Positions 1-58,501 of a stretch of DNA of 64,000 nucleotides are shown piece after piece. Positions within the stretch are counted from its first letter, which is position 1. Each line of letters starts with the position of its first letter. This stretch comes from Paragordius varius (taxonomy: Eukaryota; Animalia; Nematomorpha), in the NCBI GenBank assembly GCA_964247055.1, contig OZ176052.1, positions 11,780,001 through 11,844,000 of the forward strand. Reading direction: 5' to 3'. Below the pieces are notes generated by a model. It had not been told where the DNA came from. It did not search any database and worked only from the letters and a program-made list of their open reading frames with translations. The position numbers were made by a program, and so were the translations under genes.

Positions 1-3000
1 TATTGAAAACCATGATACCTTGGATAAACGAATGAAGAAATCTCGGATAATTTCATGCATATTTAAAAGGATACCTTGGATAAACGCGCGAAGATATGTG
101 GGATAATTTTAAGGATACTGAAAACCATGATACCTTGGATAAACGGGTGAATATATCTCGGAGGGTATTTAGGATATTGAGAGCCATGGTACCTTGGATA
201 AACAGATGATGATATCTCGGAGGGTATTAAGGATATTGAAAACCGTGGTAGGTTGGATAAATGCGTTAAGATATCTCGGACAATTCAAAGGATACTGAAA
301 ATCATGATATCTTAGACAAACGGGTGAAATATCTCGGGGGATTTTAAGGATACTGAAAACCATGATACCTTGGATCGGGTGAAGATATCTCGGGGGATTT
401 TAGGATACTGAAAACCATGATACTTTAGATAAACGGGTGAATATATCTCGGAGGGTATTAAGGATATTGAAAACCGTGGTACCTTGGATAAACGCGTGAA
501 GATATATCAAATAATTTTAAGGATACAGGAAACCATGGTACCTTGGATAAACGGGTGAAGATATCTCGGGGGATTTTAGGATACTGAAAACCATGATACC
601 TTGGATCGGGTGAAGATATCTCGGAGGATTTTAAGGATATTGAAAACCATGATACCTTGGATAAACGGGTGAAGATATCTCGGGGGATTTTAAGGATACT
701 AAAAACCATGATACCTTGGATCGGGTGAAGATATCTCGAGGGATTTTAAGGATATTGAAAACCATGGTACCTTGGATAAACGGGTGAAGATATCTCGGGG
801 GATTTTAGGATACTGAAAACCATGATACCTTGGATAAACGGGTGAAGATATCTCGGGGGATTTTAGGATACTGAAAACCATGATACCTTGGATCGGGTGA
901 AGATATCTCGGGGGATTTTAAGGATATTGAAAACCATGGTACCTTGGATAAACGGGTGAAGATATATCGGGGGATTTTAGGATACTGAAAACCATGATAC
1001 CTTGGATAAACGGGTGAAGATATCTCGGGGGATTTTAGGATACTGAAAACCATGATACCTTAGATCGGGTGAAGACATCTCGGGGGATTTTAGGATACTG
1101 AAAACCATGATACCTTGGATCGGGTGAAGATATGTCGGGGGATTTTAGGATACTGAAAACCATGATACCTTGGATCGGGTGAAGATATCTCGGGGGATTT
1201 TAAGGATATTGAAAACCATGGTACCTTGGATAAACGGGTGAAGATATCTCGGGGGATTTTAGGATACTGAAAACCATGATACCTTGGATCGGGTGAAGAT
1301 ATCTCGGGGGATTTTAGGATACTGAAAACCATGATACCTTGGATCGGGTGAAGATATCTCGGGGGATTTTAGGATACTGAAAACCATGATACCTTGGATC
1401 GGGTGAAGATATCTCGGGGGATTTTAAGGATATTGAAAACCATGGTACCTTGGATAAACGGGTGAAGATATCTCGGGGGATTTTAGGATACTGAAAACCA
1501 TGATACCTTGGATCGGGTGAAGATATCTCGGGGGATTTTAAGGATATTGAAAACCATGATACCTTGGATCGGGTGAAGATATCTCGGGGGATTTTAGGAT
1601 ACTAAAAACCATGATACCTTGGATCGGGTGAAGATATCTCGGGGGATTTTAAGGATATTGAAAACCATGGTACCTTGGATAAACGGGTGAAGATATCTCG
1701 GGGGATTTTAGGATACTGAAAACCATGATACCTTGGATCGGGTGAAGATATCTCGGGGGATTTTAGGATACTGAAAACCATGATACCTTGAATCGGGTGA
1801 AGACATCTCGGGGGATTTTAGGATACTGAAAACCATGATACCTTGGATCGGGTGAAGATATCTCGGGGGATTTTAAGGATATTGAAAACCATGATACCTT
1901 GGATCGGGTGAAGATATCTCGGGGGATTTTAGGATACTGAAAACCATGATACCTTGGATCGGGTGAAGATATCTCGGGGGATTTTAGGATACTGAAAACC
2001 ATGATACCTTGGATCGGGTGAAGATATCTCGGGGGATTTTAAGGATATTGAAAACCATGATACCTTGGATCGGGTGAAGATATCTCGGGGGATTTCAAGG
2101 ATACTGAAAACCATGATACCTTGGATAAACGGGTGAAGATATCTCGGGGGATTTTAAGGATATTGAAAACCATGGTACCTTGGATAAACGGGTGAAGATA
2201 TCTCGGGGGATTTTAGGATACTGAAAACCATGATACCTTGGATAGGGTGAAGATATCTCGGGGGATTTTAAGGATACTGAAAACCATGATACCTTGGATC
2301 GGGTGAAGATATCCCGGGGGATTTTAAGGATACTGAAAACCATGATACCTTGGATAAACGGGTGAAGATATCTCGGGGGATTTTAAGGATATTGAAAACC
2401 ATGGTACCTTGGATAAACGGGTGAAGATATCTCGGGGGATTTTAGGATACTGAAAACCATGATACCTTGGATCGGGTGAAGATATCTCGGGGGATTTCAA
2501 GGATACTGAAAACCATGATACCTTGGATAAACGGGTGAAGATATCTCGGGGGATTTTAAGGATATTGAAAACCATGGTACCTTGGATAAACGGGTGAAGA
2601 TATCTCGGGGGATTTTAGGATACTGAAAACCATGATACCTTGGATAGGGTGAAGATATCTCGGGGGATTTTAAGGATACTGAAAACCATGATACCTTGGA
2701 TAAACGGGTGAAGATATCTCGGGGGATTTCAAGGATACTGAAAACCATGATACCTTGGATAAACGGGTGAAGATATCTCGGGGGATTTTAAGGATATTGA
2801 AAACCATGGTACCTTGGATAAACGGGTGAAGATATCTCGGGGGATTTTAAGGATACTGAAAACCATGATACCTTGGATCGGGTGAAGATATCTCGGGGGA
2901 TTTCAAGAATACTGAAAACCATGATACCTTGGATAAACGGGTGAAGATATCTCGGGGGATTTTAAGGATATTGAAAACCATGGTACCTTGGATAAACGGG

Positions 3001-6000
3001 TGAAGATATCTCGGGGGATTTCAAGGATACTGAAAACCATGATACCTTGGATAAACGGGTGAAGATATCTCGGGGGATTTTAAGGATATTGAAAACCATG
3101 GTACCTTGGATAAACGGGTGAAGATATCTCGGGGGATTTTAGGATACTGAAAACCATGATACCTTGGATCGGGTGAAGATATCTCGGGGGATTTTAGGAT
3201 ACTGAAAACCATGATACCTTGGATCGGGTGAAGATATCTCGGGGGATTTTAGAATACTGAAAACCATGATACCTTGGATCGGGTGAAGATATCTCGGGGG
3301 ATTTTAAGGATATTGAAAACCATGATCCCTTGGATCGGGTGAAGATATCTCGGGGGATTTTAAGGATACTAAAAACCATGATACCTTGGATAAACGGGTG
3401 AAGATATCTCGGGGGATTTTAAGGATATTGAAAACCATGATACCTTGGATCGGGTGAAGATATCTCGGGGGATTTTAAGGATATTGAAAACCATGATACC
3501 TTGGATCGGGTGAAGATATCTCGGGGGATTTTAAGGATATTGAAAACCATGATACCTTGGATCGGGTGAAGATATCTCGGGGGATTTTAAGGATACTAAA
3601 AACCATGATACCTTGGATAAACGGGTGAAGATATCTCGGGGGATTTTAAGGATATTGAAAACCATGATACCTTGGATCGGGTGAAGATATCTCGGGAGAT
3701 TTTAGGATACTGAAAACCATGATACCTTGGATCGGGTGAAGATATCTCGGGGGATTTTAGGATATTGAAAACCATGATACCTTGGATCGGGTGAAGATAT
3801 CTCGGGGGATTTTAAGGATACTAAAAACCATGATACCTTGGATCGGGTGAAGATATCTCGGGGGATTTTAGGATACTGAAAACCATGATACCTTAGATCG
3901 GGTGAAGATATCTCGGGGGATTTTAGGATACTGAAAACCATGATACCTTGGATCGGGTGAAGATATCTCGGGGATTTTAAGGATATTGAAAACCATGATA
4001 CCTTGGATCGGGTGAAGATATCTCGGGGGATTTTAGGATACTGAAAACCATGATACCTTGGATCGGGTGAAGATATCTCGGGGGATTTTAGGATACTGAA
4101 AACCATGATACCTAGGATCGGGTGAAGATATCTCGGGGGATTTTAAGGATATTGAAAACCATGATACCTTGGATCGGGTGAAGATATCTCGGGGGATTTT
4201 AGGATATTGAAAACCATGATACCTTGGATCGGGTGAAGATATCTCGGGGGATTTTAAGGATACTAAAAACCATGATACCTTGGATAAACGGGTGAAGATA
4301 TCTCGGGGGATTTTAAGGATACTAAAAACCATGATACCTTGGATAAACGGGTGAAGATATCTCGGGGGATTTTAAGGATATTGAAAACCATGATACCTTG
4401 GATCGGGTGAAGATATCTCGGGGGATTTTAGGATACTGAAAACCATGATACCTTGGATCGGGTGAAGATATCTCGGGGGATTTTAGGATACTGAAAACCA
4501 TGATACCTTGGATCGGGTGAAGATATCTCGGGGATTTTAAGGATATTGAAAACCATGATACCTTGGATCGGGTGAAGATATCTCGGGGGATTTTAGGATA
4601 CTGAAAACCATGATACCTTGGATCGGGTGAAGATATCTCGGGGGATTTTAGGATACTGAAAACCATGATACCTAGGATCGGGTGAAGATATCTCGGGGGA
4701 TTTTAAGGATATTGAAAACCATGATACCTTGGATCGGGTGAAGATATCTCGGGGGATTTTAGGATATTGAAAACCATGATACCTTGGATCGGGTGAAGAT
4801 ATCTCGGGGGATTTTAAGGATACTAAAAACCATGATACCTTGGATAAACGGGTGAAGATATCTCGGGGGATTTTAAGGATACTAAAAACCATGATACCTT
4901 GGATAAACGGGTGAAGATATCTCGGGGGATTTTAAGGATATTGAAAACCATGATACCTTGGATCGGGTGAAGATATCTCGGGGGATTTTAGGATACTGAA
5001 AACCATGATACCTTGGATCGGGTGAAGATATCTCGGGGGATTTTAAGGATATTGAAAACCATGATACCTTGGATCGGGTGAAGATATCTCGGGGGATTTT
5101 AGGATACTGAAAACCATGATACCTTGGATCGGGTGAAGATATCTCGGGGGATTTTAAGGATACTAAAAACCATGATACCTTGGATAAACGGGTGAAGATA
5201 TCTCGGGGGATTTTAGGATACTGAAAACCATGATACCTTGGATCGGGTGAAGATATCTCGGGGGATTTTAGGATACTGAAAACCATGATACCTTGGATCG
5301 GGTGAAGATATCTCGGGGGATTTTAAGGATATTGAAAACCATGATACCTTGGATCGGGTGAAGATATCTCGGGGGATTTTAGGATACTGAAAACCATGAT
5401 ACCTTGGATCGGGTGAAGATATCTCGGGGGATTTTAGGATACTGAAAACCATGATACCTTGGATCGGGTGAAGATATCTCGGGGGATTTTAAGGATATTG
5501 AAAACCATGATACCTTGGATCGGGTGAAGATATCTCGGGGGATTTTAGGATATTGAAAACCATGATACCTTGGATCGGGTGAAGATATCTCGGGGGATTT
5601 TAGGATACTGAAAACCATGATACCTTGGATCGGGTGAAGATATCTCGGGGGATTTTAAGGATACTAAAAACCATGATACCTTGGATAAACGGGTGAAGAT
5701 ATCTCGGGGGATTTTAGGATACTGAAAACCATGATACCTTGGATCGGGTGAAGATATCTCGGGGGATTTTAGGATACTGAAAACCATGATACCTTGGATC
5801 GGGTGAAGATATCTCGGGGGATTTTAGGATACTGAAAACCATGATACCTTGGATCGGGTGAAGATATCTCGGGGGATTTTAAGGATACTAAAAACCATGA
5901 TACCTTGGATAAACGGGTGAAGATATCTCGGGGGATTTTAAGGATATTGAAAACCATGATACCTTGGATCGGGTGAAGATATCTCGGGGGATTTTAGGAT

Positions 6001-6530
6001 ACTGAAAACCATGATACCTTGGATCGGGTGAAGATATCTCGGGGGATTTTAGGATACTGAAAACCATGATACCTTGGATCGGGTGAAGATATCTCGGGGG
6101 ATTTTAAGGATATTGAAAACCATGATACCTTGGATCGGGTGAAGATATCTCGGGGGATTTTAAGGATATTGAAAACCATGGTACCTTGGATAAACGGGTG
6201 AAGATATCTCGGGGGATTTTAAGGATACTGAAAACCATGATACTTTGGATAAACGGGTGAAGATATATCGGATAATTTTAGAGAAATTGAAAACTGGTAC
6301 TCGGATAAGATGAAGATATCTCGGAGGATATTAAAGATATTGAAAACCGTGGTACCTTAGATAAACGGATGAAGATATCTCGGAGGATTTCACATAAATT
6401 AAAAACTGTGGTACCTTGGCTAAACGGGTGATTATATTGCGGATAGAATCAGGGATATTCAAAACCCTGATACCTCGGATAATAGGGAGAAGATTTGGAG
6501 GATTTAAAAGATATTGAAAACCCAGAGAAT
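1..6530. repeat. Tandem satellite array, ~55-59 bp monomer (consensus ttttaggatactgaaaaccatgataccttggatcgggtgaagatatctcggggga), well over 100 copies
   Basis: Monomer read directly. Length variants: tttta/ttttaa (+1) and ggatcggg/ggataaacggg (+3). The consensus is 24/55 G+C, well above the flanks, and G-rich on the + strand. The core is homogeneous; copies are diverged at ~1-560 and ~6240-6530. Confidence 0.98.
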
Positions 6531-7637
6531 ATTATTTAACATGACGAGATTAAATATAAAAACTAAAATTAAATAAAATAAACACATAAATAACTCGACT
6601 AAATAAGATTATCCAACACTAATATAATCAAACTCATAAAAACATAACATAACTGAAAAACGCACACGCTTTTTTATGGATTGCATATCTCTTTACAACG
6701 CATTAAAAGACTCATAAAATCTAAAAAACTGTCCTATCAATCGTTAATGGATGTTAATGACAATAAACCACCATTCGGACCTAATAAATTGCGATATCTA
6801 AAAATGTTTTGATATTATGTTGATTTTATATGGATTTGATGATATATTTTTGTTATATTTTTTGGATTTACCAAAAAAATTTTTTTGCCATTTATTAATA
6901 AGAACCACTTCCCGCAAAAGTGTAAATAACTCTGTTAATAAACACTTAAGGGTCAAAACCAAAGGCACCATGAAAATTCTGATCATTCTCTCAGAATCTA
7001 TATATTGTATCATTCCCCGATCTCAGACACTAAGTAATTGTATCATCATATAATATCCTTTTTACCTTTAATCTCAAGTTCTAAATTGTGATACGACCAA
7101 CAAACGTTACGACATTTTAATTTTAAGATCAATAAGTGCCCAAAATAAGCTAGTAAAATACATGAATATTAAGTAAATCATTTACATATTTATACCATAA
7201 TATGCCTTTATTTGCTAAATATTAATCTAAAAGATCCAAAAAAACGACAACGAAGAAGTTTAAGATGATTGTTTTTAACGTTCATTGTTTTTTGAAGTGT
7301 GCGTTGAAAGGCTAAACATATTATATTTTTAAGTTAATTTTTTCGACTTATGGTATTCGAATTTCAGATCTGGTGCATTATATCCCAAAAAAGTGATACT
7401 TTAACATTTTATATCCCTATTCAAAGTATCAGGCCCAAATTAATATGTTTACCGTTTTCGACGCATGCTACTAAAAAAAATTTGAATGAATGTAAAACTT
7501 TTAAATTCTCATCTCAAACTTTTTGGCCGCCATATTTTTTATTTTTTTTTAAATCGTTGATACTACCGGCAAATAAACATATATTACACAGTGCAAAACA
7601 AGAAATTATGGATATATTCTGATAGGAAAATGTATCA

Positions 7638-8521
7638 AAATTATCATGGTTCTTTTGATTTTGGCCCTTGCTCCATATGAGAAAATGGCGAAATTTGAGC
7701 TTATTTTTTTGATTTTTTTGGTGAAAGCTAGAGGCTTCATTCCAAAAAATATCAATAAAATAAATAATTAATTACATATAAAAAGCAAAACAATATTTTG
7801 TAAAAATTTAATTTATAGATGTGGGCTCTGAAAGTCTTCCCAAATGCATACGTTGAAAAATTTCATTTTTACCAAATTTTAGTCATGCTGGAAACGGTTT
7901 AAAATATTAAAAAATAACTTTTTTATATAATTTTATAATGCTGATATTTCTTGCAAATATGAATATAAAGGTCCAATTTGCAAATTTAGTGAATTTTGTA
8001 AAAAAACACATTACGCTTTAATATAAATGTTAAGACAAACGAATATACTGAATTCTGAAATTAAAATGATCAGCACATCGAATTAGGCAAAAAAAGTGTT
8101 TTTATATTTTATAGTGGCTTTTAACCCGTTTACATCATAACTCAAGAGAGTACGAAGTATGCCAAAATCTTGCTAAAAGCTAGTTGATATCAAAAATATA
8201 TTTAGAAATTTATCAAGCATTCCCGACTTAACGTTATTTTAAGAGGACTAGCTCATTTTAGAAGAGCGAAAAAAATTGGGCTAGAGGAGCCCATATCTAA
8301 AAATTAAATTTTTTGTGAAGAGATTGTTTTACTTTTTATATGTAGTTTATAATATAATTAATGATATTTTATGGAATAAAGCCTCTAGCTTTTACAAAAA
8401 AAATTATATAAAAAAAATGTGCGCAAATTTTGTCACTTTCTGATATGGAGCACCTACCACAAAAGTGCAAATAACTTGATTGACACACTCGAAACCAAAA
8501 CCAAAAGCACCGTGATAATCC
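7638..8521. mobile_element. Degenerate non-autonomous element with long imperfect terminal inverted repeats (MITE-like)
   Basis: ~7640-7830 (catggttcttttgattttggccc...aaagctagaggcttcattcc...tagatgtgggctc) is the inverted complement of ~8287-8521 (gagcccatatcta...ggaataaagcctctagcttt...ccaaaaccaaaagcaccgtg). Related arm fragments lie at ~6900-6985, ~18290-18440 and ~19130-19170. Confidence 0.65.
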
Positions 8522-8650
8522 AGATACATTTTCCTATCAGAATATATTTCACAAGGTTCCCCCGATTTTAGGGAATTATTATGGGCAAAAAAGGACATAA
8601 TTAACACGTCATTATGTTAAGGAATAGTTTTATATCTAAGAACGACTTTT

Positions 8651-10291: not shown

Positions 10292-13200
10292 ATGCTCTTG
10301 CTGCTCCTAATATTATTTAATATCCTCTTCAGGTGGATGATTTCGCTTAATTCCTACTCAGGTAATTATTTATCAACTTTAAGGTTATAACAATCCACCA
10401 ATGTTTGGTGATTACGAGGCACAAAGACATTGGATGGAAATAACATTTAATATACCCATAAAAGAATGGTATCCATATAAATGATAAAATATAGGTATTT
10501 AAACACAACTTCAAACGATTTGCTTTATTGGGGCCTAGATTATCCTCCTTTAACAGCTTATCATAGTTATATGATGGGGAAAATGTATAATTTATTATAT
10601 TTTAGAGTTAACATTATAAAGCCACAATGGAATTTGTTATATACTTCTCGAGGCTTAACTGATCCTAATCACAAACTGTTTATGCGATCGACAGGTAAAT
10701 ATATAAACCTGATATCAGTGTTAATATCCGATCTGTTTATATTTTTTAGCGCTATTTGGTTTTATTGGAAAAAATGCAGCTTTCAAAGCCAATGGGTTAC
10801 ATCACTCTTTAATATTTAGAAAATGTATATGTTACTTTCTTTAATGTATCCCGGCCTAGTTTTGATCGATCATGGCCATTTTCAGTAAGTGAAAAATTTT
10901 ATTTTTATTTAGTATTTTGTCGATTACCAAACCGGATAACGTTATATTATTTATGGAATATTTTCAAGTTAAAATAAATGATAGTTTTTTGTGCATATAC
11001 ATGTATGTTCTTGTATCAAAACCTTAGTAAATTTTCTCAAATAATTTTTTTAACCGGGCCGCGTTTAAAAACAGTTAATAGATTTTTGTTAATAATGCAA
11101 TATCATCACAACGTCCTGTATTATTTTATTGAAATTTACGAAATTTTTAAACTTTATTCAAAAATTTAATATAATTAAGGTTATATTTATGGGTTTACAA
11201 TTTATCCCACAAAAGTCATTTAAGTTATATAATTAAAGCTATATACATATAATTTATGGATAGGTATAATTGTGTTAGCCTTGGTTTATTTGTTTGGTGC
11301 TTTGCAATGATAAGCCAAAAAAGCTATGTTACCTCAGCAATATGTTTTGTCTTAGCGCTTAATTACAAACAAATGGAACTTTATCACGCTTTACCCATTT
11401 TTGCTTATTTGTTGGGTCAATGTTTTTACAAGCCCAGCGAATCTCCTAAGTAAGATTTATAGATAAATATTAGTAATTTTTTTATATAATTCACTTTAAA
11501 AACATTTAGTTTTTTCAAAAAAAACTATGGTTTTTGTTGTGTTTTTTTAAAACTAATTTTATTATTTTATATTAAGCGATTACAATGGAGACAGGAAAAG
11601 GGGAATCAAGTATGCCATTAGACATATTATTTATCCAATATTTATTATTACTTTACTTTTGTTATTATAACTCTTTAAAAAGTTATTTTAATGATTAGTC
11701 ATCTTTCAGATTATTTTAATTATATATATATATATATATATATGTTTTGGGTATATATGGAAATTTTTATAAAAATATTTTTATTTATCATTTTAATTAA
11801 TTCTAACTACTTTGTGGTTATTTTTGTAAGAATAAATATAATTTTAATTTGTTAAATTTAATTTTTTTTCAAAAATACATCATACTTTTAAATTCAATAA
11901 TATTATACATTAAATTTAAATACAGCCTATTATTGTTTATGCGTATTTCGATTGCGACAATTGTTGCATTCATTGTATGTTGGTATCCTTTTATTTGGCA
12001 AAAAGATGTGTTTTATGCCGTCTTACAGCGCCTTTTCCCGTTCAATCGTGGCCTTTATGAAGTATTTTGCACTTATTTATCATATTAAATCTTGATTTTT
12101 TAATTTTTTTAAAATAAATTAAATGAGTTAAAATACTTGTAAAAATTTACTTACTATAATATAGGATAAAGTTTCAAATTTTTGGTGCTCCCTATCTCCT
12201 TTCATCAAATTCAAAGCTATTTTTGATCAACAAACACTGATATACTTAAGGTATTTATTTTTCTAATATACAGTCTAAGATTTAAAGAAAAGCTTTTTAC
12301 GGCTATTAATTTTGTTAATTAAGTTTGATCATAATATAATTATTTACTTTGAAACATAATTGGTTATATTTTTTCGCAATCAATTAGTTCCGGATTGACG
12401 TTATGTGGCTCCCTACCATCCTTTTTGTTGTGTCTTAAAAAACCGCAAATGCATACACTAAAATTGGCATTGGTAAACATTGGAATATTTTGATATAAGC
12501 TTTGTTTTTTTTCTAAAAAAACTGTAATTTTTTACTTTATTAATATTTAATGATTTATTAAATTTAGATCAATGTCTCACTATCCTTCTTCCTATTCAGT
12601 TTTCAGGTCCATGAAAAAAGCATTTTACTAGTCGCTATGTAAGTTATTAATAAAATTCAACGATTTTTAATTCAAAATTATATATATTCACCGAATCTAA
12701 AATATCGATTGCTCTTATATTTGTGTACCGAATTTTTCAATACGATAATAAACTAAATTAAGTTTTTATTGGATTGATATTTATTTTGTTTGATTATGAT
12801 TTAATATTATGTTTAAACCCTTTTTATTTTAATAAGTAACTCAATATATCTTAAATTTACAGTTTATATTGTATTATGATAATATATAAAATACGCTCAT
12901 TAAAATTTGAAAATATGGTGAATAAAAGAATTAAAAATAAAGAAATTCAGTTCTTTACTATTAATTAAATTTAATTTGCGTAATTTTTAAGATACTTCTT
13001 GCGATTATATAAAGAAACTGAATTAAGATAGGTTATATGAGATATAAATATTAATTTATATTTTTTAAATTTATATTATTATTTTAAAAAGTCAGAATGT
13101 TTTAATGTATGTTTGTTTAAAATTATTTAAATTAATAATCAACTTATTCTGTTTTTATTAAACTATTTGTGGTAGTCTTTAAAAAGGGAACATTACACAA

Positions 13201-14330
13201 ACATAGAACTTTAAATCTATCGTTGTACTCTGACAAAAGTATTTTTAATAATGATTATGTAATGAATAGGTTCATCTACTAAATAATATTACGACTCATT
13301 CAAAAATTTTGGTATCATTCTTATTGATAATACCATTTTGTTAATATACCATTTAATATTGTAATGCTATCTTTTAGGTTTGGTGGGTTTTTAATAAAGC
13401 ATATAAATCGTATTTTACTTTTTGTTAGTATGTTTAAATTCCAAATAAAATTTATTTTTAGACCAATGCTCTTATTGTTGCCAGACTATCCATTTGCCAG
13501 TATCAATTTTCTTATGATATCTGGATTGAGGTAATAATATTAAATGTTTATACGCCTTTCATAATAAATTTACGTTTTATTGAATTAATATATATATTTA
13601 TCATTTCTATGTATTATATAGCATGTATCCTCTGTTTGTCAAGGATGGTTTAGTTATCCCATATTACGCAACATTTGTAATGTACTTTTTGTTATTTTGT
13701 CAAGAACTCATAATCAATCCGATATGTTCAACTTTCAAAATACCGACCAAAATAAATATGGTTTGTTAATTTATTTTTATAAACCTTATATGCCAGTTTG
13801 TTCTTTTACACTATATCAGAACCGGTTATATGGAACCGGAATCATTATCTTTTTACGTATTAATATTTTTGAGATTTTTAGATGATAGTCACAAACATAT
13901 AAATATAATTTTAAAATGCAATATATTACATGTGGAATGCAAAGCCAAAATTTTAGACAATTTTATATCATACTTGTACGAAGTAATATTTTTAATGCCT
14001 TAAAAAATTTGTACATAAAATAATTACATTATATCGTATTTTATATAGTATCGCATCTCTATGATAGCTTCATTAGTGTTAAGCGTTTCATTCCATTGGA
14101 TTAAGATTGGGGATCGTTACCATTTGCCAGACCTCATGACACTCCTTATATGTCAATTCTGTTTTATTCACTTTTTCTTTTACTTACTTTACTTCAATAC
14201 GCAAACACTATTTATGAACAACACTCTCAATGGAAAATTTGGAAGATGTTTAAGCCCTGTGAAACAAAGTAAATTAAATACGGAAATTATAAACAATCCA
14301 ACCGTGGCACAAATAAAAAAAGTTTTTTAG
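10292..14330 (+). CDS. ALG6: Dolichyl pyrophosphate Man9GlcNAc2 alpha-1,3-glucosyltransferase, 509 aa, 14 coding exons: 10292-10361, 10384-10468, 10495-10584, 10606-10694, 10719-10795, 10820-10884, 11264-11449, 11926-12061, 12165-12250, 12388-12472, 12568-12638, 13462-13530, 13622-13760, 14049-14330
   Basis: Manual GT-AG splicing gives one 1530 nt frame. It contains the ALG6/ALG8 family motifs [80 protein letters not shown] and [16 protein letters not shown]. The N-terminus and NYKQM motif are ALG6-type. Confidence 0.96.
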
Positions 14331-14662
14331 ATGCCCCAAGGGGAATTGTTATACAAAAAATTTTTGATTAAAAAATATAATGGGATTTATTGCAGTGAAA
14401 AAAAATTTGGTGATTAATTTATTTATGTTAGCCATAATATATTAGTGCGCATGATGCAAAAAAATGAATTATATTATTCAGTGATCTCAATAATCATATC
14501 AAAATAATAAATTAATATATATGATTAATGTTTTGGTGTTAAAAATATGTTAATTTATAGCAATGAATAAATATTGTCCTATGTTAGCTATACAAATGCT
14601 AGATGTAAAATAAATGCACTACTATATTAACACAGATGAGATTTATATCAAGGGAGCTCTTT

Positions 14663-17640
14663 TCATTTTTCGCCAATTTTCATTTTCATTTTTTCCAACA
14701 TTTCTTGCATTTGTTTCAGCTAAAAAATATTTTTTTTCAAGAAAATTATTGAAAGTATTAGTGTAGTAAAGTTAATAAATTTTTCTATCCACTTAGCTCT
14801 GTGCACCATTAATAATATCTTCATTGCATTATAAAACCATAAAAATTATTAAATACGTATACCTCTGCTTCTTTTTGCCTTAGAATACGGTCTTTTTCAT
14901 CCTCATCATCGGGGGTTTCTTTTGGTTTATCCCTAAACAAAAATGGGAAATATTGCGTATCTTATGTAACCTTTCATAATCTAAAAACTGGTTTCTCTGA
15001 CTTTTAAAAATTTGTATACTAATTACCATTCAATAAAATAAATAAATAATGATTTTCATTGTCTATTAGTGTCAAATTAAGCTCTATTCAATTTTTATAC
15101 AATGAAAACAATAATACCCTTTTCCTTGTTTAAGTTTAAGAGACCGGAAATTTTCGTAATGTAAATCATGAGTAACTTCTTGCAGATCTTGCATATGAGT
15201 ACTACATAAGCCAATAAATAAAATTTTACATTACCAAAAACACAAATTAAATTATAAACTAATTCTTTAAGTCAATACGATATAAATTGGTTTTAAACCA
15301 TAACAAAAAATAATTACTAACATTAGCATATTCCTTAATTTAAGGAAATCGCAATGGGAAACGTTCTCGACTTCAACCGTACCCCAAGGGTAAATGCGAC
15401 CCCTGGAATTCTTTTTATTTCCTTTGTTATCAATTAGCTCCATAGATCCACAAACAGCAAACGGTATCGAATTCTAAATTTTTATCATAATTATATATAT
15501 ATTTTTTTAAAAAGAATATATTTGATAAGATATAATACTAATTTGACTTAAATATCAATTATTAATTAGTAACATAAGTTTATGATATTTATAAGTAAAA
15601 ATTAATGCAAAATCACTAAATAAATTTAAAAGTGTTATTTATTAAAAACAATGCTCCAAAAGATATGTAGCAAATATTTATGTATGTTTTATTGAAATTT
15701 AATTTACCTTTAAACTGCGAACTTGTTGTTTAAAATCTTCATCTTCGTCACTTTCACAGTCTGGCATTTGATAAATATGAATATTATTCTCTGCGATTTC
15801 GCGCAAAACCTAAAATAATTAAATAAAATTAAAATATCAATAAAATTATTATGGTAAAAGATTTTTTTCCGTTTTACTATGCACATCTTGGCAAAAATTA
15901 AAATCTGTTTAAGGTTTATATTATTACATTTATCCATCATTTTTAATAATAGATTATATTATTAAAAAATAATAATTTAGGTAATCAACTCGCATCATGA
16001 TAAAGATATTAATAAAATTTTATTTTTTTTAAAAAAATTGGAATTGCATTACTTTCAACTAATTTATAAATATATATATACACTAAATTATTTGGAATTA
16101 AACAGTTAAGATTGCCCGTTCCATTCACTATATAGAAAAAAGGTAGGAATATTATATTTATGTATTTTACTAAATACCAAAGCATTTACATAATTATATA
16201 ATAACTTTTACGTGTAAATTTTGTCCAACAAAGTCTGCTATTTTACGTTACTTTGTTTTTAATTATATGGACTTAGATTAAATTTTGTTAAATGTGTAAA
16301 CCTTTTAAAACCCATATTTTTAAGTTAAAAGAATACTTTGTTTAATTATTTAAAAAACAATAATAAAATAGCATAATGGGTATTAGAATATATTTTGCAT
16401 TATTTTTCAAAAAAGGGGAAATTACCAACAACTATTTTCTTTCTACTCTTTTAAGATTAAAATCAGATAATTTTATCATAATTACTAACAGCCGCATGTG
16501 GTCTGCATTGAAAGGCGAATATTGCATAAATTTTATTAAAATTACAGCATAGTGTCAAACTAAGATATATTATATATATAAACTTAATTTAAATATTGAT
16601 CCTAATATCAATACACAAATAAAAAGATTAGATACTGATTAATATCGTGAAACATAAAAACTAAGGTTAATTATCTCAGAATAAACAACCAAATTAAATA
16701 TAATTTATATAAAATAATTTTTTACAGCAAAGCTTAGCATGATAGATTAATTACGGCGGAAAGGTTTAATTTAATTAACTAACTAACATTACAGATTTTC
16801 ACAAATAATGCATAAACTTTAAAATAAATTAAAATGAAGTAATAAAATGCAATAAATGACAAACCCTTTCTTTCAATGTTTTACATTCTTTTACAGTCAA
16901 TGTATCAGCTTTCGCAATCACAGGAACAATATTGACTTTATTGTGCAATTGTTTCATAAATTCAACGTCTAATGGTTTCAATCTTAAAATAATCAAATTT
17001 TGTTGTACTTTAGAATATAAATTTTGGTTTCAAAAAACTGAAAAACTTCAAAAAATTGTACCCATGTCCAATAGGATTTATGAAATAAAAACAGCAATGA
17101 ACTCGCGTGTCTACAATATGACGTCGGTTTAGGCCACTTTCATCGCACAAATAATGTTCAAACTGATCATTAATGTAATTTAGGATAGGTTCATAACTAA
17201 ATTTAACATTAAAAAATTAAAAACCAATTAGAATTATCAATTGCATCCCCGTATCCAGGTGTATCGACCACAGTTAAACGCAATTTTACACCTCGTTCTT
17301 CAATCTCGACGGAAGATGCCTCAATTTTTAACGTTTGATTAAGCTGATCTGAAAAGATATAAAGTTAAAATTACCTTCAGCATTAGGTAAAACCCTATCA
17401 GGGTATAGATCAGTTAAAAACAGACTATTAATCAATGTACTTTTTCCTAAGCCAGATTCACCTAAAATTATTATAAATTTATTCTGTACCTACAACCATA
17501 AGTGTAAATTCAAATCCCTTTTTAACTGACTTTCTATGAACTTGGTTAGGAAGATTGGCAAATCCAACATAATTAGCGCCGTCAAGAGGGCTCTAAACAA
17601 TAAATAATGACACAAAAACTTTTATATCGGTTAAAGACAT
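14663..17640 (-). CDS. SEPT2: Septin, SEPT2 group (SEPT1/2/4/5-like), 350 aa, 11 coding exons: 17640-17620, 17592-17490, 17461-17375, 17348-17225, 17196-17062, 16982-16865, 15809-15708, 15473-15322, 15201-15118, 14932-14863, 14719-14663
   Basis: Manual splicing gives a 1053 nt frame: [42 protein letters not shown] (G1), VVDTPGYGD (G3), IAKADTLT (G4), [35 protein letters not shown] and a C-terminal coiled coil. The symbol denotes the subgroup, not proven 1:1 orthology. Confidence 0.95.
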
Positions 17641-20369
17641 TGGCTTGCTGGAGCTAACTGTTAAAAATTAACGTATGTAATTTACAGTAAAACGTACCAA
17701 GAAAGAGAAAAGATTATAAAAAACAACAAACGCTGTAAGAAAAATTATTTTTACTGTGCTTATTTAAGGAATTATTATATATCTCTCCGTTATTTATTTT
17801 AATAATTACCATAGGTTAAGTACTAAATTTATACTGACTTTTATTCCAAAAATTGAATTTTCGGATTTGTGTACACATTTATTATTTATTTGAAAATTAA
17901 ATATTATTAAGTTCTGTTTCACACCATTGTTTTAAATTAGAAAAAAATTATTGATATAGAGCTAATCACACTTTTATATCCCACCAATTTTTGAATTTTT
18001 TTTTCCAAATCAATTGACCCCATAACAAATTTTGATATTAAAAAACTGAAAAGAGCGGTGCCAATTCAAATATATGCCTACCTTAACACTTCGATACGAA
18101 ATGGAAGGTAATATTTAAATTGGTATTAATTAAGGCTGACCAGTTTATAAATACACTGAGTCCAAAATCGGGAGGTATATTAAACAACCTGTTATATATA
18201 TCTTCTGAATGATAATTCAGATCATGGTGCTTTTTGTTTTGGCGCTTACGAATGATAAACGAAAGTTTTAGAGATCTTTTTGTAGTAAGTGCCCTTATCA
18301 GAAAAAGCAAAATTTGCGCACATTTTTTTAAAAAAATTGTTTTGGTGCTTCATTCTAAAAATTACTAAAATATATCATAAAATCCCAATAAAGAGCAAAT
18401 CAATATTTTTAAAATATTACAATTTTTAGATGTGTGCTTCGAATGTCCAATATTTTTAACTCTTCGATAGGGTATTTCTTTAAAATGAGTGCAAAATGCC
18501 GTAGATATTATAAAAACACTTTTTCATTCTATGATGAGCTAAATATTTCAGTCGCTTCAAAATTTTAATTTGAAAGCTGGTTTACCTTTGAATTTTGGTT
18601 ATTGATAACAAAATACAATTTATATTTGACATAAATTTAAGTATTACGAATTTTATTAAAAATATTAAATGGTTTAAATACATTCCATATTTTGAAATAT
18701 TTAATTTTAAAAATTCATCATGATATCTATTCCTATGGACTGTAGAGCTGGTTTGTATTCACGTGTTTGTAAAAATAAAATAAATTAGCAGAAATATATT
18801 TTAGCTTTGATAGTTTATCAAACTTTTCGACGGCATTTATGTTTTACAACTATCTATCAAATATCGTCTTTTATAACTAAAATTTAATACTATACTAAAA
18901 TCACCTTATTATATATAAATAACGATAAATTTCGCATTTTTAAAATATTAACTAACGTGATGTTGCCTAAATTTTTCCTTCGGGTTTATTCATAAAATGT
19001 AATCGTTTAAAATTTTTCTATGCACCAATATTTTGTGTAACTTAGTGTAAATCGAGGAATATGTAAAATAATTTAACGATATATATATATATATATATAT
19101 ATATATTCTGATAGATAAACGCAACAGGTCAATGGTCCTTTTGGTTTTGGGCCTTAAATTCAAGAAGTTATTATCACTTTTCTCGATCCATATCGAAATA
19201 TCACGAAACGCACTTTATGCTGATTAATATTTTTTGGTATAAATGTTTCATTCCGAAAAATATTTTAAAATATATCATATGCTATAATCAAAATGCTATA
19301 CAATCTATAAATTTATAAAAATGGAAAATGCTGCTATTTTTGTTAAACTTTAATTAGGTGTGCAGACCCTCAAATCGGCTGATCTTATAAATGCCGAGAT
19401 ACACAAGTTATTATGTAAAAAAGAATACTTTGCTTAATAAATTCTTTTAGCAAGATTTTTTGCGTATTTTATGGTGAAACATGATATAAACCATGCTGTA
19501 TACTCGCTCTTCTGATATATTTTAATCGGCGCACCAAAAATTTGGAAAACCAATTAAATATATATAATTTCATAATTTGCAAAAATGCTATTCATCACTC
19601 TTGATAATTTTGATATTTATTAAACAATTGCTCCATTAACAATAAATTTTAACTTAAAAAGATCATTGCTCTAAGCACTATATATCAAATATCTTTTTAT
19701 TGATCATTGTAAAAATTTTGATAATCAATTATCAAAAATTGGTAAAATAAGTTTTTATATTGTGTTCGTATATTTTTTACAGTTTTTATGTCGTAATCTA
19801 TAATGTATTTATTAATTTGGTCAGCCACGCGAAGCCATTTGTGTGGGCCACCACTGGTGTAAACGATATTAAATAAACTTGTTGATAATATTAAAATAAT
19901 CTTTCCGATACAAATTCTGATTTACTTATCTTTAACCTCAAATTTTGAATATTTTGTATTTATTTATAAAGGCGCCTATCAAAATATGCGCTTTTATTAG
20001 CTCCTGTCATCCCTAAAATTGGCAAAATTTAAATGAAAATCGTGCCTATAAGTTATCTTTTAGGAAACATATAGGTTCATTTGAAACAATTTTTTTGTCA
20101 TATTTTTAAATTAGCTCGTGTGTTCAGTTCCTTTAGACTGTTTCGCATTATAATAAAGTGTTTACGAAATCAATCAAAAAATAATAGAAAAAGTATACCT
20201 CTTGAAAGATAATGCCTAAAAATCTTATTAATTTCAACACATTCTTATTCTCAACAAATTAAAATCTTTTGGGTGTGTCTTATTTCCATTACCTAATATA
20301 TATATATATATATATATATATAATCATATGAAGCAATTTTACAGAGAGCCCAAAGGCGAATTCGGTATA

Positions 20370-51693: not shown

Positions 51694-54282
51694 ATGGTTT
51701 TAATCTTATCCCATCTATTCAATTTTCACCTTGTTTGTACTGTACTTGTGAGTTTGCCTTTAGATCTGTCTATGTCTGCTAATGAGATTCTTGGTAATGT
51801 AGAACGGAGACACGCTGCATCACACATCTACTTCGATTTAAATGATCTCATTTTAAAGGATGAGACTGTTAATGCCAGTCTCCTCACACCACCATATACT
51901 AATGTTACAAACCCAAGTAAACAAAATCCCAAAAAAACCAAATTAAACGCCTCTAAAGACGTATTTAATGGCATTTTTTCCACTGTTTCACCCATTCCTA
52001 CAACATTAGCATACAATAATTTGTATCATCGTTATACACATAAAATCTATGATTTTCTTCGTGGATCATTCAATGATTTGTCTACTTTATCACCTACTTT
52101 TTATTATGAAGACGAAAATGTTAATTTGTTTTATTCCTATCGCGACTTTGATTGGGACGAGTCGTTAAGAAGAAAAAATTATAAGCATCAAATTAATTAT
52201 TATAATTATCCCATTTATCCCAATAATTATAGCTATGAGGATATCGATGATTACACTATGCAACATTGTAAGTCCATTTTATGAAAAAAAATGATTCAAA
52301 AATGCAAACCCTATTAAAATGCGTTACTACCACAAAGCACCAACCATACACATCCACATTTTTATCATTTGCTTTTTATTTCTTAATTGCAATTAAAAAA
52401 CTGAAATGTTAATTTATTTTATGCATTTTTTGTGTATATAGTTGGGCCGTTCTTTCTCGATCAAATGAGTAGCGTAACTGTAATGGAACAGAGTCAAGCC
52501 TTGTTTTTTTGTGAGGTGATGGCTAACCCTTATCCCACGTTTCGATGGACCATAAATGGTATGGAAATTCAAGAGAGGCAACGAAGGTTTATACATACTT
52601 GGTTAGAGTATTTATATATTATTGATTTCAATAAATACTCCATCATGACTCACAATGTAGGTGTAGTTAACGACCTATAAAATATTTTATGTCCATTTAT
52701 TATTAGTAATAATTAATAAATAATCAATAATGTTAGCTTAGGCTTGCTGTGTAACATTGGTCATTAGAATGTATTCATAACAGAAAGCATTAAAGAGTAT
52801 ATGATAAAGTCATTCAGAATATAAAAACAAACACACATAAATAATATCTATAATTCATGAGTACAAATCACAATACCAGAAGCTTAATAGTTTTATCATA
52901 CCATAAAGATGTGCCCATATATTTTTTAAATTATTATAGATAATTGTGGTTTTATATTAATTAAATTTAATAATAACCGATATTAGAAATATTAAATGTA
53001 AAATTCTTTCCATTTGCTCTTTGCATAAATATTGTAAGAAAATCGCTCTATGTACGAAACAGATTTCACATTTTACAAATGGAAAAGGGACGTATAGGAT
53101 CTATTTTAAAGATCGCACCTGTTATAAATAAAGACAACGGATCTCTGATTGAATGTTCAGTTACGGACCCACATAGTAAAGATAATACGATTACAACTCA
53201 AGCAAAACTTATAATTCTTTCCGGTAATTATATTTATTCAAATATATATTACATAGATGTATAATTAATTGAGTCCATTTGGCATAGACCGGTAAAAATA
53301 TGTGAGATTCTTCATTTTAAAATTCACAATATCAATTAAATTATGTTGTTATAATGAATATATAGATAATGAAGTTCCATCAGGCTTTCCCCACATAACA
53401 CACGAGCCCCGACGAAAAGTTGTGGAGTTTAAAACTCCGTTTACACTTTCGTGTGAAGCAAAGGGTGAACCTCGTCCCTACATTACGTGGCTTAAGGATT
53501 ATGCACCTATACCCTTTAATACACCACCTGCTGGCTACAGCGATGAAAATAATGATATCATTCATTGGAATAACAGTTTTAATAATGATGATGCTCAACA
53601 ACACATATCAAACCGTTGGAATCGCTATAAATTAATGAGGAATGGTAGGATTAATTGCATATATATCTAGTCTATATTGATTTTTTATTTTATGGTCAAA
53701 TTATCTGTATATAAGATAATAAATATAGGCGTGTTTTTAAATGTTATAGGTAATTTTTGATTAAAATTGTTAAACCTTTTTTAACATAGATCGCAATCGT
53801 ATAAACATGACAATAAAAGTAAATTCACCATTTTGTATGACAGTACGGGTTTTATTTATTTGGCATCCCATTTGTTTCTTATTATTTACACCGTTGATCT
53901 CAAATACCGTAATTAAATTATCATTTTCTCTAGGGTTGCTATTAGTTGAAAACTCCGATTTTTCGGATGAAGGGGAGTATCAATGTATGGCTACAAACAT
54001 ACATGGGTCAGTTTACAGTAAATCGGTGGCAAAAATTGGTGTACGAGGTATATTTAAACACTTAATATTAAAGCAATACCACATTTTTTTCCATTTAAAT
54101 TTTTATTATTTTAATTGCACAAGGAAAATATTATATATTCAGTTTTCTAATTACAATAGAAGTTCAGCTTATTGAAAGTTTAGGGTGGATTAAAAAGTTT
54201 TCATACCATAATATTCATTATAATAAATCGTATCACGCCGACAATTGTATTTCTTTTTTTTTAAAAAAATGAATGTTTTTAA

Positions 54283-54318
<36 letters not shown>

Positions 54319-57300
54319 AAAATACATGAGAATGAGGAAACGATATAGGCATGATTGAATAAAATTTTATCAAGAGAAAGATTAGTCTATAAAATAATTA
54401 ACAATTTTAATAATTAGAACGAAGAGTCCCTCCAAGATTTAGTATAAAACCTCCTGACAAAATGATTATTCCGAAGTCTAATGGTAATAAATCCTATTTA
54501 GTGGATGAACCTAAACAAATTGTATGTGTCGCTATCGGGTCTCCGATGCCCTTGGTCAGATGGAAAGTTGATAAGGGTATTTTAAAATACATCAAATAAA
54601 AACTATATCTTTTTTGAATATCGAATTAATTAATTCCTAATTATGTTATCTAGATCCAGATTCCAATTTCGAAAATGTTATTTTGAATAATGAGCAGGAT
54701 ATTGATGATAATTTACGAGAAAGAGATCTCTTTCAAAATTTCTATCAAACATTCAAAACACAGGATTCAAACGAAACCATTTATGATCCGAAAATGGATT
54801 TATATCGAAAAAAGTAACTTAGCCTTTAAAAAATTACTGCTGAATATAGAAAGATGTCTATCAATGTATAAGATTTTCTATTTAATTTTTTAGTCCCTTC
54901 TTTGGAGCCGTTACTATAGGCAAAAATATTCTCAGGCTTCCATTTGATGGTTTATCTCGGGATGTCAATTTTACGTGTGTAGCCATTTCGAAATTGGGAA
55001 CACTCACTGCTACTACAATGATAATAGTTAAGGGTAAAATGATTATATAAATCAATTACAACATAATGTTTTGTTCTTAAGCCTATTTGTCTTTAGATCC
55101 GTTTCAAAATAATTTTTTTACAATAGCGAGGAAACCAAAAATTCTTTGCAATAAAAATTGTTCCGGAACCGGTATTGTTTTTGGTCGTTTTTTGGTTCAT
55201 ATTTTAAAAAATTCAAATATATCCTATTTTTTAATAGCATGTGGATGAGTTGCCGTATTATTACACAATGGAAAATGTGAGCTTTTAATTTTTAAAAAAC
55301 TTACTCTCGTAATTCAAGATAACGTAAAAACAATATTCAAAATGATATTTTGGACCGTATGGAACCGTGGTTTCTAAAATGTTTTGAAGTGAGTGTTGAA
55401 ACAGACGAAGCGCTTGATTCCTGTCCCAAATCCTTTAGATAATTAATTTAATATATATGACTCTATGTAATTCATATTTATATACAGATTTGCCATCTAG
55501 TCCATCGTATTTGGATGTCATTAATATGTCAAGTAGAAGTATTTCGATTAAATGGGAAAGAGTCATTAACTTGGATGAATCGTTGGATTTTTCCAACATC
55601 ACTTATCATATACAAGTTTATAATTTTTTTCTTTGATATTACTCACAATATAATGCATAGTACGATATGAAGTAATGATATATGCATGAATTATTTTAAC
55701 AGAGAGCAGTTTTATTATGGGACGTGTTGAAATTACAGTCATGTATCCTTTATTTTAAATTTATTTTCTTTTGTTAAATGGGTATAAATATTTGTTAAAG
55801 AATGGAAAAAACAAGGCTCTATGATATTAACAATATCATTTACAATCAAAAAAGTATTACCATAGGGCTCTTGTTTTTTCCATTCCTTACAAATATTTAT
55901 ACCCATTTAACGAAAAATTTTTTTGATAAAATATGATTGTAATATTACCCTTAAAACAGCTGTTCAATCTTTTCAATAATATGTTTTAAAATTATGGAAT
56001 GTTTGTCCTTTATATAATTGCTATATTCAATATTTTTATCGCATAACAATAAGAAAAATAATTAATATGATAACCCAATTAAATAAAAAGAAAATAGGCC
56101 CCTTGTATTTGCTATTTATAAGAATATTAATATTGAAAATTTAGTGAAACCATTTTTAATCATTCGGATCTTTTTGTACTATATTATTACACAATTATTT
56201 CGTTTATTTTATAGTTATTTACTATGCAATGGCTGACAATTTCAACCAATTTCATGGTGCTAAAAATAAAATATATGTTGTAGGTTTTTGAACAAAATTT
56301 AACCCGCGGAGATTGGGCGTCTAATTCGATTGATGATCCTCTTACTAACTTTGTCAAAATCCGTTCTTTGAAAAGTCGATATCCTTCTATAGTAATTAAA
56401 CATCTAAAACCCTTCACAGATTATCAGTTGCGCATACGAACAGTCATCGATTATGGAGCAGGGCCATGGTCAACACCGTTAAATTTCAAAACTTTGGAAG
56501 ATGGTATTAATACATAATTTATAGTTTTAATTTGTTTATTTTTGCGATTGATTTTTTTCATATTTTTCATTTTGGTATGATGTTGCTCAAAAAATCTAAT
56601 ATAATTATTACATAACTAAATAAATTTGTTCATGTATTAGTCCCCGAATCCCCGCCTAGTGAAATTAAGATCCGTCCAATGAGTCTAACCGAGATAAGTA
56701 TAAAATGGGACATTCCATCTAAACCAAATGGTCCTATACTAGTAATTGCATAATTTATCATTTCTTTCATTAAACACTAATAATCATTTACATTAATTGT
56801 TTTATATGGTGGGATTCAAAATATTTCTGTAATGATATATAGACATAAAATTTTACTCTGTTTTACCAAATTAAACGTTAAAGTTTAATGACGTAAAGAT
56901 ATTTCAACTTTTAAAAGTATATTGTATACACGATATCCTAATGATGATTAGGCTTACATAATCTATTACATTGCTGGAGCGACTTTTCAAACCCTTAAAC
57001 CATTTGAAATACCTGGTAAGAGTGCATCCATTTTTACCCATCCTTTACTCAATTATTCGATGGGGGCCGTTCCACTGCTAGATGTATGGACAAAATTAAC
57101 CATAACACATACGGATCAATCGCGATTAATTGTGTTTACTATTAAAGGACTCAAACCTCTTACCCTGTACACAATAAAAATGCAGGCGGTTAATTCCAAG
57201 GGTGTTAGCCCCATGTCGGAATCACTCTCTACTTTCACTTCGGTTTTGGGTGAAGATAATATTAATATCATATAATTAAATGTTTCATTATAACTCTAGT

Positions 57301-58501
57301 CGTAGGCTACGTTTAAATTTATCCGATAAATATGCATAATGCTTGTTTATTTCACACTAGTAGGCCAATTTGCAACACAGGAGTGTATGAAAAAAAGAAA
57401 GGAAATAATTGTTTCAACAATTGGTTGTTTTTTCCATACACCGTGTTGCGAATTGCCCAAGTGTGAAATACGCAAAAATGCATACTGTATATAAATTTGC
57501 TTAGCACGCAAAATGAAAGATTAAAAAATTTTTAAATGTTCATATTACAGAATAAATATTGTATAATAACTTGTAGATTTTATCGTTATAATTATCTTAC
57601 AATTTAGTACCAAGTGAAATACCAAAATTTACCGGTACACCCTTGTCCCCTTCATCCATAACACTAAGTTGGGATAAAAATTTAGATTTCCACATTCTTC
57701 GGTTTTATTATCTGGCCTATCATGGCTATAGCCCTGACCAGGACTCGCAACAAAAATCTATTAAAATAAATCACGTAAATTTTTATTAATTCACGATTTC
57801 TTATGACATATTTAGATTCAAAAAATATTTTTATTTTTTTATTTTTAGCCAGATATTCTCAGTTACACCTTATCTAACTTAACTCCAGATACTATGTATA
57901 CAATTTTTTTGATTCCGGCGAGCGACACTCATTGTGGTATCCCCTCACAACCATTATTATTAAGGACCCCAGTTCAAGGTATTATCTCTTTAGTGTCTGT
58001 CTGTTTTGCATGTGAATTTAATAACATTGTAAATATGTTGAATGTCAATTTATTTTTTTGCTTAAGTGGCTCGCATTACACCCATGTCAAAATCACCTCC
58101 AATAATAAATTTGGCAAACGTTTCATCCTGGTTTAAATTATTTGTGGACACTATCAACAGTCGCACAGTAAAAGTAACTCTTAAGATTGTGAAGCCTATT
58201 TCGTTCGCTCAAATTTCCCAGCTAAATTCATTAACATTACGCTGGGAACCTAGAGATGGTCTACCTGACAACTCATTTTCTCGAATCGTTTATGTTAAAC
58301 CGATTATTGAAAAATTTGCTAATAGTCACAGTTTAATGAATGCCTTACTACTTGATCAAACAATTAATGGATTGAAACCAGGAAATGTTTACATTTTCTC
58401 CTATACTTTTGAACTTTTGAATAATGTTAATAATCGGAATCATGGAACGAATCCGATTGCTGCTCCTTCGGATATGGTTGAATTACAAACGCTCGAAGAC
58501 G
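51694..58501 (+). CDS. Lar: LAR-family (type IIa; PTPRF/PTPRD/PTPRS-like) receptor tyrosine phosphatase, 5' part (~1070 aa: signal-like N-terminus, 3 Ig, 4 FN3). Exons: 51694-52267, 52442-52586, 53063-53223, 53366-53644, 53934-54047, 54418-54576, 54654-54813, 54894-55033, 55488-55615, 56284-56503, 56641-56741, 56952-57249, 57608-57774, 57849-57978, 58067-58501. Later exons not found in the window.
   Basis: All 15 exons join in phase with GT-AG. LAR-diagnostic segments include [77 protein letters not shown] and [18 protein letters not shown], followed by FN3 repeats. The phosphatase domains are not seen, so the family call rests on the ectodomain. Confidence 0.88.
55769..55916. repeat. Near-perfect intronic inverted repeat (55 bp arms, 37 nt loop)
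   Basis: gttaaatgggtataaatatttgttaaagaatggaaaaaacaaggctctatg pairs with catagggctcttgttttttccattccttacaaatatttatacccatttaac. Confidence 0.9.
57348..57470. repeat. Intronic inverted repeat or small MITE (123 bp)
   Basis: tatttcacactagtaggccaatttgcaacacaggagtgtatgaaaaaa pairs with tttttccatacaccgtgttgcgaattgcccaagtgtgaaata. TA is present at both ends. Confidence 0.8.

Follow-up and report, generated by a model that had tools for sequence, protein, structure and literature searches.

Introns of 21-28 nt near the start codons of an ALG6-septin gene pair in the horsehair worm Paragordius varius

Short introns close to gene starts have been described in flatworms, where Opisthorchis felineus and other species carry microintrons of <75 bp, their lengths peaking at 37 bp and 90 bp (Ershov et al. 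2019, PMC6530080); these cluster with each other, preferentially near the transcription start, and intron definition has been suggested as the cause (PMC6530080). In Gyrodactylus salaris the intron modes lie at ~32 and ~58 bp, and the short mode dominates ordinal positions 1-2 (Hahn et al. 2014, PMC4040987). Animal introns of <30 bp were reported only from myxobolid Myxozoa and Dicyema japonicum among 51 genomes (Hadjez et al. 2026, PMC13644364), a survey in which nematomorphs are not mentioned, and the word intron is absent both from the Gordionus genome report and from a nematomorph comparative preprint. Here we analyze a 64,000-nt stretch of the genome of the horsehair worm Paragordius varius (assembly GCA_964247055.1, contig OZ176052.1, positions 11,780,001 to 11,844,000; hereafter the window, with positions counted from its first letter), in which a gene for the glucosyltransferase ALG6 and a septin gene carry introns of 21-28 nt (hereafter tiny introns) near their start codons and only there. 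An initial annotation of the window knew of no description of such a pattern, which does not hold in view of the published flatworm 5' microintrons (PMC6530080, PMC4040987): the kind of pattern is already known, while neither its occurrence in Nematomorpha nor this extreme form of it was found in the literature.

Gene models were obtained by threading the intron lengths of the initial annotation from both ATGs under the condition that ends be GT..AG and the frame stay open. The counts that follow refer to introns of the coding sequence (CDS); a further candidate intron, of 40 nt, lies in the 5' untranslated region (17658-17697). Threading of ALG6 (Alg6_Alg8 glucosyltransferase; 10292..14330, forward strand) gave a single solution of 14 exons, 13 introns and 510 aa, with Pfam PF03155 recovered on four exon pieces; the septin (17640-14663, reverse strand) gave two solutions, which differ only in the position of a 120-nt intron, with 11 exons, 10 introns and 351 aa, and Pfam PF00735 on five pieces. 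The two genes are convergent, with stop codons 332 nt apart. In 5' to 3' order the ALG6 introns measure 22, 26, 21, 24, 24, 379, 476, 103, 137, 95, 823, 91 and 288 nt and the septin introns 27, 28, 26, 28, 79, 1055, 234, 120, 185 and 143 nt, and all 23, the nine tiny ones included, have GT-AG ends. The tiny introns are ALG6 introns 1-5 and septin introns 1-4, consecutive in each gene. Counted from the ATG, the last of them ends at +528 in ALG6 and +444 in the septin, and the first non-tiny intron starts at +594 (ALG6 intron 6, 379 nt, 10885..11263, placed by threading) and +580 (septin intron 5, 79 nt, 16983..17061, reverse strand, placed by threading and Pfam). All later introns are at least 79 nt long, and 13 of these 14 fall between 91 and 1055 nt. 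The lengths and offsets of the initial annotation were thus reproduced by threading, as was its observation that the tiny class is strictly 5' with no CDS intron between 28 and 79 nt in these two genes; its probability of 1/270270 for such an ordering is arithmetically right, but was calculated post hoc.

Several lines of evidence strongly indicate, from the DNA, that the tiny segments are spliced introns. Six of the nine are not multiples of three, so that the frame is kept only by their removal, and two more carry an in-frame stop. Removal is required by the frame for ALG6 introns 1 (22 nt, phase 1, 10362..10383, GT-AG) and 2 (26 nt, 10469..10494), both on the forward strand like the rest of the gene, and for septin intron 2 (28 nt, 17462..17489), which splits the P-loop and lies, like all the septin introns, on the reverse strand. 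An in-frame stop would be read if ALG6 intron 5 (24 nt, 10796..10819), the last tiny intron of that gene, or septin intron 1 (27 nt, 17593..17619, GT-AG) were retained. The coordinates of the septin Pfam profile run unbroken across introns 3 (26 nt, 17349..17374), 4 (28 nt, 17197..17224, the last tiny one) and 5. In an alignment of the read-through open reading frame (ORF) to yeast Alg6 (PDB 6SNH), the two tiny introns that are multiples of three and free of stops, ALG6 introns 3 (21 nt, 10585..10605) and 4 (24 nt, 10695..10718), show up as gaps of exactly 7 and 8 residues, and removal of the introns restores a collinear protein against Pfam, 6SNH and the ALG6 and septin of Gordionus. Because these two introns keep the frame and lack stops, their retention would add 7 or 8 residues to the protein instead of leading to decay. 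Among the tiny introns of Paramecium, lengths that are multiples of three without stops are depleted, unlike the two of nine found here.

Variation among the four sequencing runs compared, all of DNA, is in line with this picture; no RNA run containing the stretch was found. The tiny-intron sequence recurs in independent runs, and in a strain diverged by 1-5% a contig of 621 bases that covers the 5' end of the septin gene has four indels, each of them either before the ATG or inside tiny intron 1 or 4 (chance ~0.006); septin intron 1 is 25 nt in this strain instead of 27, and intron 4 carries a 1-nt deletion in some contigs. Septin intron 1 is nevertheless the least secure of the nine, as its model depends on a first exon of 7 codons. 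TNA-like motifs 7-13 nt before the AG and T-rich 3' ends occur in the introns, which at 80-90% A+T are indistinguishable from chance in this respect. No transcript-derived ALG6 protein of this species was found among two protein collections. As an observation on the runs themselves, X4 and X5, which bear the same species label, differ by 1-5% over 11760-17759 in many substitutions and small indels, which suggests a second strain or cryptic species, and run X3, with another organism label, carries the same DNA at >=99%, perhaps because that label is of an infected host.

The tiny ALG6 introns occupy positions that, judged from exon lengths, are older than bilaterians. ALG6 exon lengths of 85, 90, 89, ~85, 65, ~186, 136, 86, 85, 71 and 69 nt recur in Tetraodon and Lingula, and Nematostella shares them apart from the 136-nt exon, in place of which it has two pieces of 63 and 82 nt. 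The exons flanking ALG6 introns 2-5 have the same lengths in Nematostella, Lingula, Tetraodon and Gordionus, so that introns of <30 bp stand at conserved metazoan positions: the 85-nt exon preceding intron 2 is common to all four, the 90-nt exon before intron 3 is kept in five species, and the 89-nt exon before intron 4 and the 65-nt exon after intron 5 are likewise conserved. Since the positions are common to a pufferfish, a brachiopod and a sea anemone, the tiny introns are old introns that shrank and not new insertions. The sequence identifies them as ordinary spliceosomal GT-AG introns at ancient positions, the start-proximal ones of which have fallen to 21-28 nt in this species. Two other ALG6 genes are uninformative on positions: that of Fasciola hepatica is a single intronless, retrogene-like ORF of 1500 nt, and that of Steinernema carpocapsae retains only four introns, of 44-49 nt.

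Outside nematomorphs, intron size in ALG6 is unrelated to position in Nematostella (rho = 0.09) and Lingula (rho = -0.08). Tetraodon ALG6 gave an unexpected rho of 0.78, with 5' introns of 283, 122, 70, 82, 212 and 190 nt and 3' introns of 836-7822 nt, a trend that may be a coincidence or a gene-specific feature.

A second horsehair worm offers a closer comparison. Among 1.8 billion representative proteins the closest ALG6 belongs to Gordionus sp. m RMFG-2023, at 61% identity over the full length, and the next best matches are <50% identical to the Gordionus protein; the septins of the two worms share 82% identity. In Gordionus montsenyensis (GCA_954871325.2, locus L001, 10001-30127) ALG6 and a 351-aa septin are likewise convergent, and the reported G+C content of the assembly, 26.9%, is in line with the 25% of the window outside its satellite. 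Exact threading of the annotated protein places 13 introns in Gordionus ALG6, and homology-guided threading places 10 in its septin, all at positions identical to those in the window. Exon 2 of the Gordionus septin is one codon longer than its counterpart here, for which tolerant threading was used; this yielded 350 residues against the 351 annotated, so that one 3' junction may be off. The introns measure 316, 42, 50, 45, 47, 1893, 448, 56, 930, 1316, 1179, 1795 and 1083 nt in ALG6 and 44, 47, 64, 107, 104, 1916, 1209, 411, 584 and 2518 nt in the septin. Septin introns 2, 3 and 4, tiny in P. varius, thus correspond to introns of 47, 64 and 107 nt and intron 5 to one of 104 nt; septin intron 1 follows the same 21-nt first exon in both worms and is 44 nt in Gordionus; ALG6 introns 1 and 6 stand at the positions of the 316- and 1893-nt introns.

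The two genera therefore have in common the gene pair, the positions of its introns and a size polarity from short at the 5' side to long at the 3' side, with a Spearman rho of intron size against position of 0.66-0.88 in all four nematomorph genes. In both worms the start-proximal introns tend to be the shortest of the gene, and introns further downstream have grown to hundreds or thousands of nucleotides. The sizes themselves differ: the shortest Gordionus introns are mostly start-proximal but measure 42-64 nt, none is <30 nt at this locus, and the distal introns are much larger, giving gene spans of 10.7 and 8.1 kb for ALG6 and septin against 4.0 and 3.0 kb here. In Gordionus ALG6 the switch to long introns comes at the same homologous intron, but at +983, and in the septin the sizes rise as a gradient (44, 47, 64, 107, 104, 1916 nt) and not as a step. 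Size polarity is thus conserved in a second genus without conserved physical distance, and the fixed zone of ~550 nt, or about three nucleosomes, that had been proposed from the window is not supported by the comparison, given the switch at +983, the 316-nt intron at +74 and the septin gradient. Beside that 316-nt intron we note that a second annotated Gordionus ALG6 product starts at an internal methionine in exon 2 (L001 10074-10407), a hint of an alternative start inside the first intron.

A third gene in the window serves as a control. It encodes an immunoglobulin/fibronectin type III (Ig/fn3) receptor (51694..58501, forward strand; Pfam I-set, Ig_3 and fn3) and was modeled by simple dynamic programming trained on ALG6 and the septin, with tiny introns priced like long ones; the model is rough, and approximate after 58500. 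From the ATG at 51694 the first exon runs for 574 nt without an intron, the first intron (174 nt, 52268-52441, forward strand, from the same model) starts at +575, and all of the ~15 introns belong to the ordinary class. The model used no tiny intron. The introns of this gene go down to 74 nt, or to 64 nt if a less likely donor at 58003 replaces that at 57979. Candidate tiny introns in this gene (e.g. 58168-58194) appeared only when the tiny-intron penalty was lowered, were unconvincing and were set aside. The first intron at +575 and, with the preferred donor, the minimum of 74 nt agree with the initial annotation, which had named the gene Lar; because Pfam finds no phosphatase domain in the window, and only Ig and fn3 domains in this gene, that name is unverified. 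Across the three genes and ~38 introns, a small sample, the length range of 29-63 nt is empty (29-73 nt with the preferred donor in the third gene), and the short class is strictly start-proximal.

Compared with flatworms, the window shares two intron-length modes, microintrons that adjoin one another near the gene start, the presence of kilobase introns beside them and a genome that is not compact. It differs in that flatworm modes lie at ~32-37 and ~58-90 nt and the positional bias there is a tendency, whereas here the short class is 21-28 nt, the empty range extends up to 74 nt and the three genes show no exception. Flatworm microintrons are also described as having splice sites nearer the consensus and a lost pyrimidine tract relative to other introns; no such difference is visible between the 9 tiny and 14 long introns here, a sample too small and AT-rich to weigh on this point. 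As the present lineage belongs to Ecdysozoa and not to Spiralia, its short start-proximal introns have an origin independent of those of flatworms. Schistosoma mansoni is also said to have smaller 5' than 3' introns. The myxobolid Myxozoa and Dicyema are alike in their 20-30 nt lengths, GT-AG ends, conserved ancient positions and adjoining short introns, but there the median of all introns is 22-27 nt and the genomes are compact, whereas in the window tiny lengths are confined to the start-proximal introns, the 23 introns of ALG6 and the septin have a median of ~100 nt, and a kilobase intron and a 6.3-kb satellite are present, which fits neither a short median nor a compact genome. In animals the general rule is that the first intron is the longest (cited in PMC4040987); this rule likewise makes length depend on ordinal position, with the opposite sign. 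Ciliate tiny introns, which PMC6530080 and PMC13644364 mention, are of similar length. They occur genome-wide and without position dependence.

We consider it somewhat better than even, at a probability of roughly 0.55, that the pattern arose from start-proximal intron definition, combined with selection against long DNA near the promoter and a lowered minimal spliceable length. Under this explanation the introns of the start-proximal cluster would be recognized as units, from one intron end to the other, and removed, probably during an early, cap-proximal phase of the polymerase and perhaps with the help of cap-proximal or early-elongation factors; DNA that is long, AT-rich and prone to repeats would be selected against in the neighborhood of the promoter; and later introns, recognized across exons, could expand freely. 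In this lineage the minimal spliceable length may then have dropped, which would have allowed only the introns that were already minimal, the start-proximal ones, to shrink below 30 nt. The Ig/fn3 gene, intron-free over its first 574 nt and without tiny introns beyond, supports this explanation. The two length classes, separated by an empty range, fit the earlier proposal of two splicing regimes or a start-proximal zone, and the polarity is real, non-random and found in two unrelated genes; a fixed distance is not supported.

A number of points weigh against this explanation. The sample is three genes in one window, distances were counted from the ATG and not from the transcription start site, and splicing of the tiny introns is read from DNA. 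In Gordionus ALG6 the first intron, at +74, measures 316 nt and the eighth 56 nt, so that the polarity is a tendency there and not a rule, and the switch lies at no fixed distance; because the two worms share ancestry Gordionus is no independent replicate. The short 5' introns of Tetraodon ALG6, finally, imply that part of the ALG6 pattern could be gene-specific.

A stronger claim, that a distinct splicing regime tied to the transcription start removes the 21-28 nt introns, which would be too short for ordinary splicing further down the same transcripts, and that distance from the start site and not ancestry sets the size class, we regard as doubtful. Comparably unlikely, in our estimate, is a purely mutational origin, in which mobile-element insertions and tandem duplications are kept out of, or purged from, the surroundings of promoters and small deletions occur throughout, so that 5' introns drift to the smallest sizes with no special splicing. 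This would explain the growth of distal introns, which reach kilobases in both species and are larger in Gordionus at nearly every distal position; it also suits the 1-2 nt variation of tiny-intron lengths between strains, a sign that length is not rigid, and the similar splice-site ends and GC content of 9 tiny and 14 long introns, a comparison that is small and AT-rich. Yet a deletion bias should also shrink insertion-free distal introns to ~25 nt, and these stop at 74-140 nt. Of the 14 distal ALG6 and septin introns 13 measure 91-1055 nt, and no distal intron in the three genes is <64 nt. Nor does it predict the empty range of 29-73 nt, and Gordionus tolerates 316 nt of intron at +74.

That both genes simply inherited short 5' introns, as a historical accident or a gene-specific architecture in which position is not causal, is less probable still. 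The size class does track the homologous intron between the two nematomorphs and not a fixed distance, and the 5' introns of Tetraodon ALG6 are short too; however, the pattern appears in two unrelated genes on opposite strands, a third gene fits it, ALG6 of Nematostella and Lingula has no polarity, and in flatworms it is genome-wide (PMC6530080). It is very improbable that the tiny segments are not spliced introns but coding insertions, assembly errors or DNA-level excisions, which we reject even though the splicing evidence is of DNA and two segments are stop-free multiples of three, because retention of six of the nine would shift the frame, both stop-free segments are exact gaps against yeast Alg6 (6SNH), all nine have GT-AG ends and match canonical Gordionus introns (those of ALG6 also introns of Tetraodon, Lingula and Nematostella), and their sequence turns up again in independent DNA runs.

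The remainder of the window holds features of other kinds. A satellite at 106-6390 is built of ~111 copies of a unit of 55 nt, although a period of 111 nt can be read as well, and the match between copies is 92%. Its G+C content is 41%, G is strongly in excess over C, and spurious long ORFs arise on its reverse strand. Upstream of ALG6, on opposite strands at 7561-7677 and 8407-8616, lies a repeated ORF fragment with the common motif SDRKMY..YHG.F.FG, probably an interspersed repeat. The word AWCAGCTGWT occurs four times (8884, 41742, 55955 and 58984) against 0.09 expected, none of them in ALG6 or the septin. No convincing conserved ORF was found in the ~33 kb that separate the septin from the Ig/fn3 gene (18000-51000), which contain low-complexity and repeat-like ORFs, e.g. 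at 32298-32526.

Introns of <30 nt are near the physical limit of the spliceosome, and in animals they have been published only for two parasite groups with compact genomes. In P. varius they share transcripts with ordinary and kilobase introns, at positions common to vertebrates and cnidarians, and the same introns measure 42-64 nt in the sister genus, which makes each gene its own natural control, and the pair of species a contrast, for the question of what sets minimal intron length. The same contrast bears on whether splicing near the cap differs from splicing further along, and on why flatworms and horsehair worms independently evolved short start-proximal introns. For the annotation of this genome there is a direct consequence: most of its genes will be broken at the 5' end by gene finders that keep their default lower limit on intron length.

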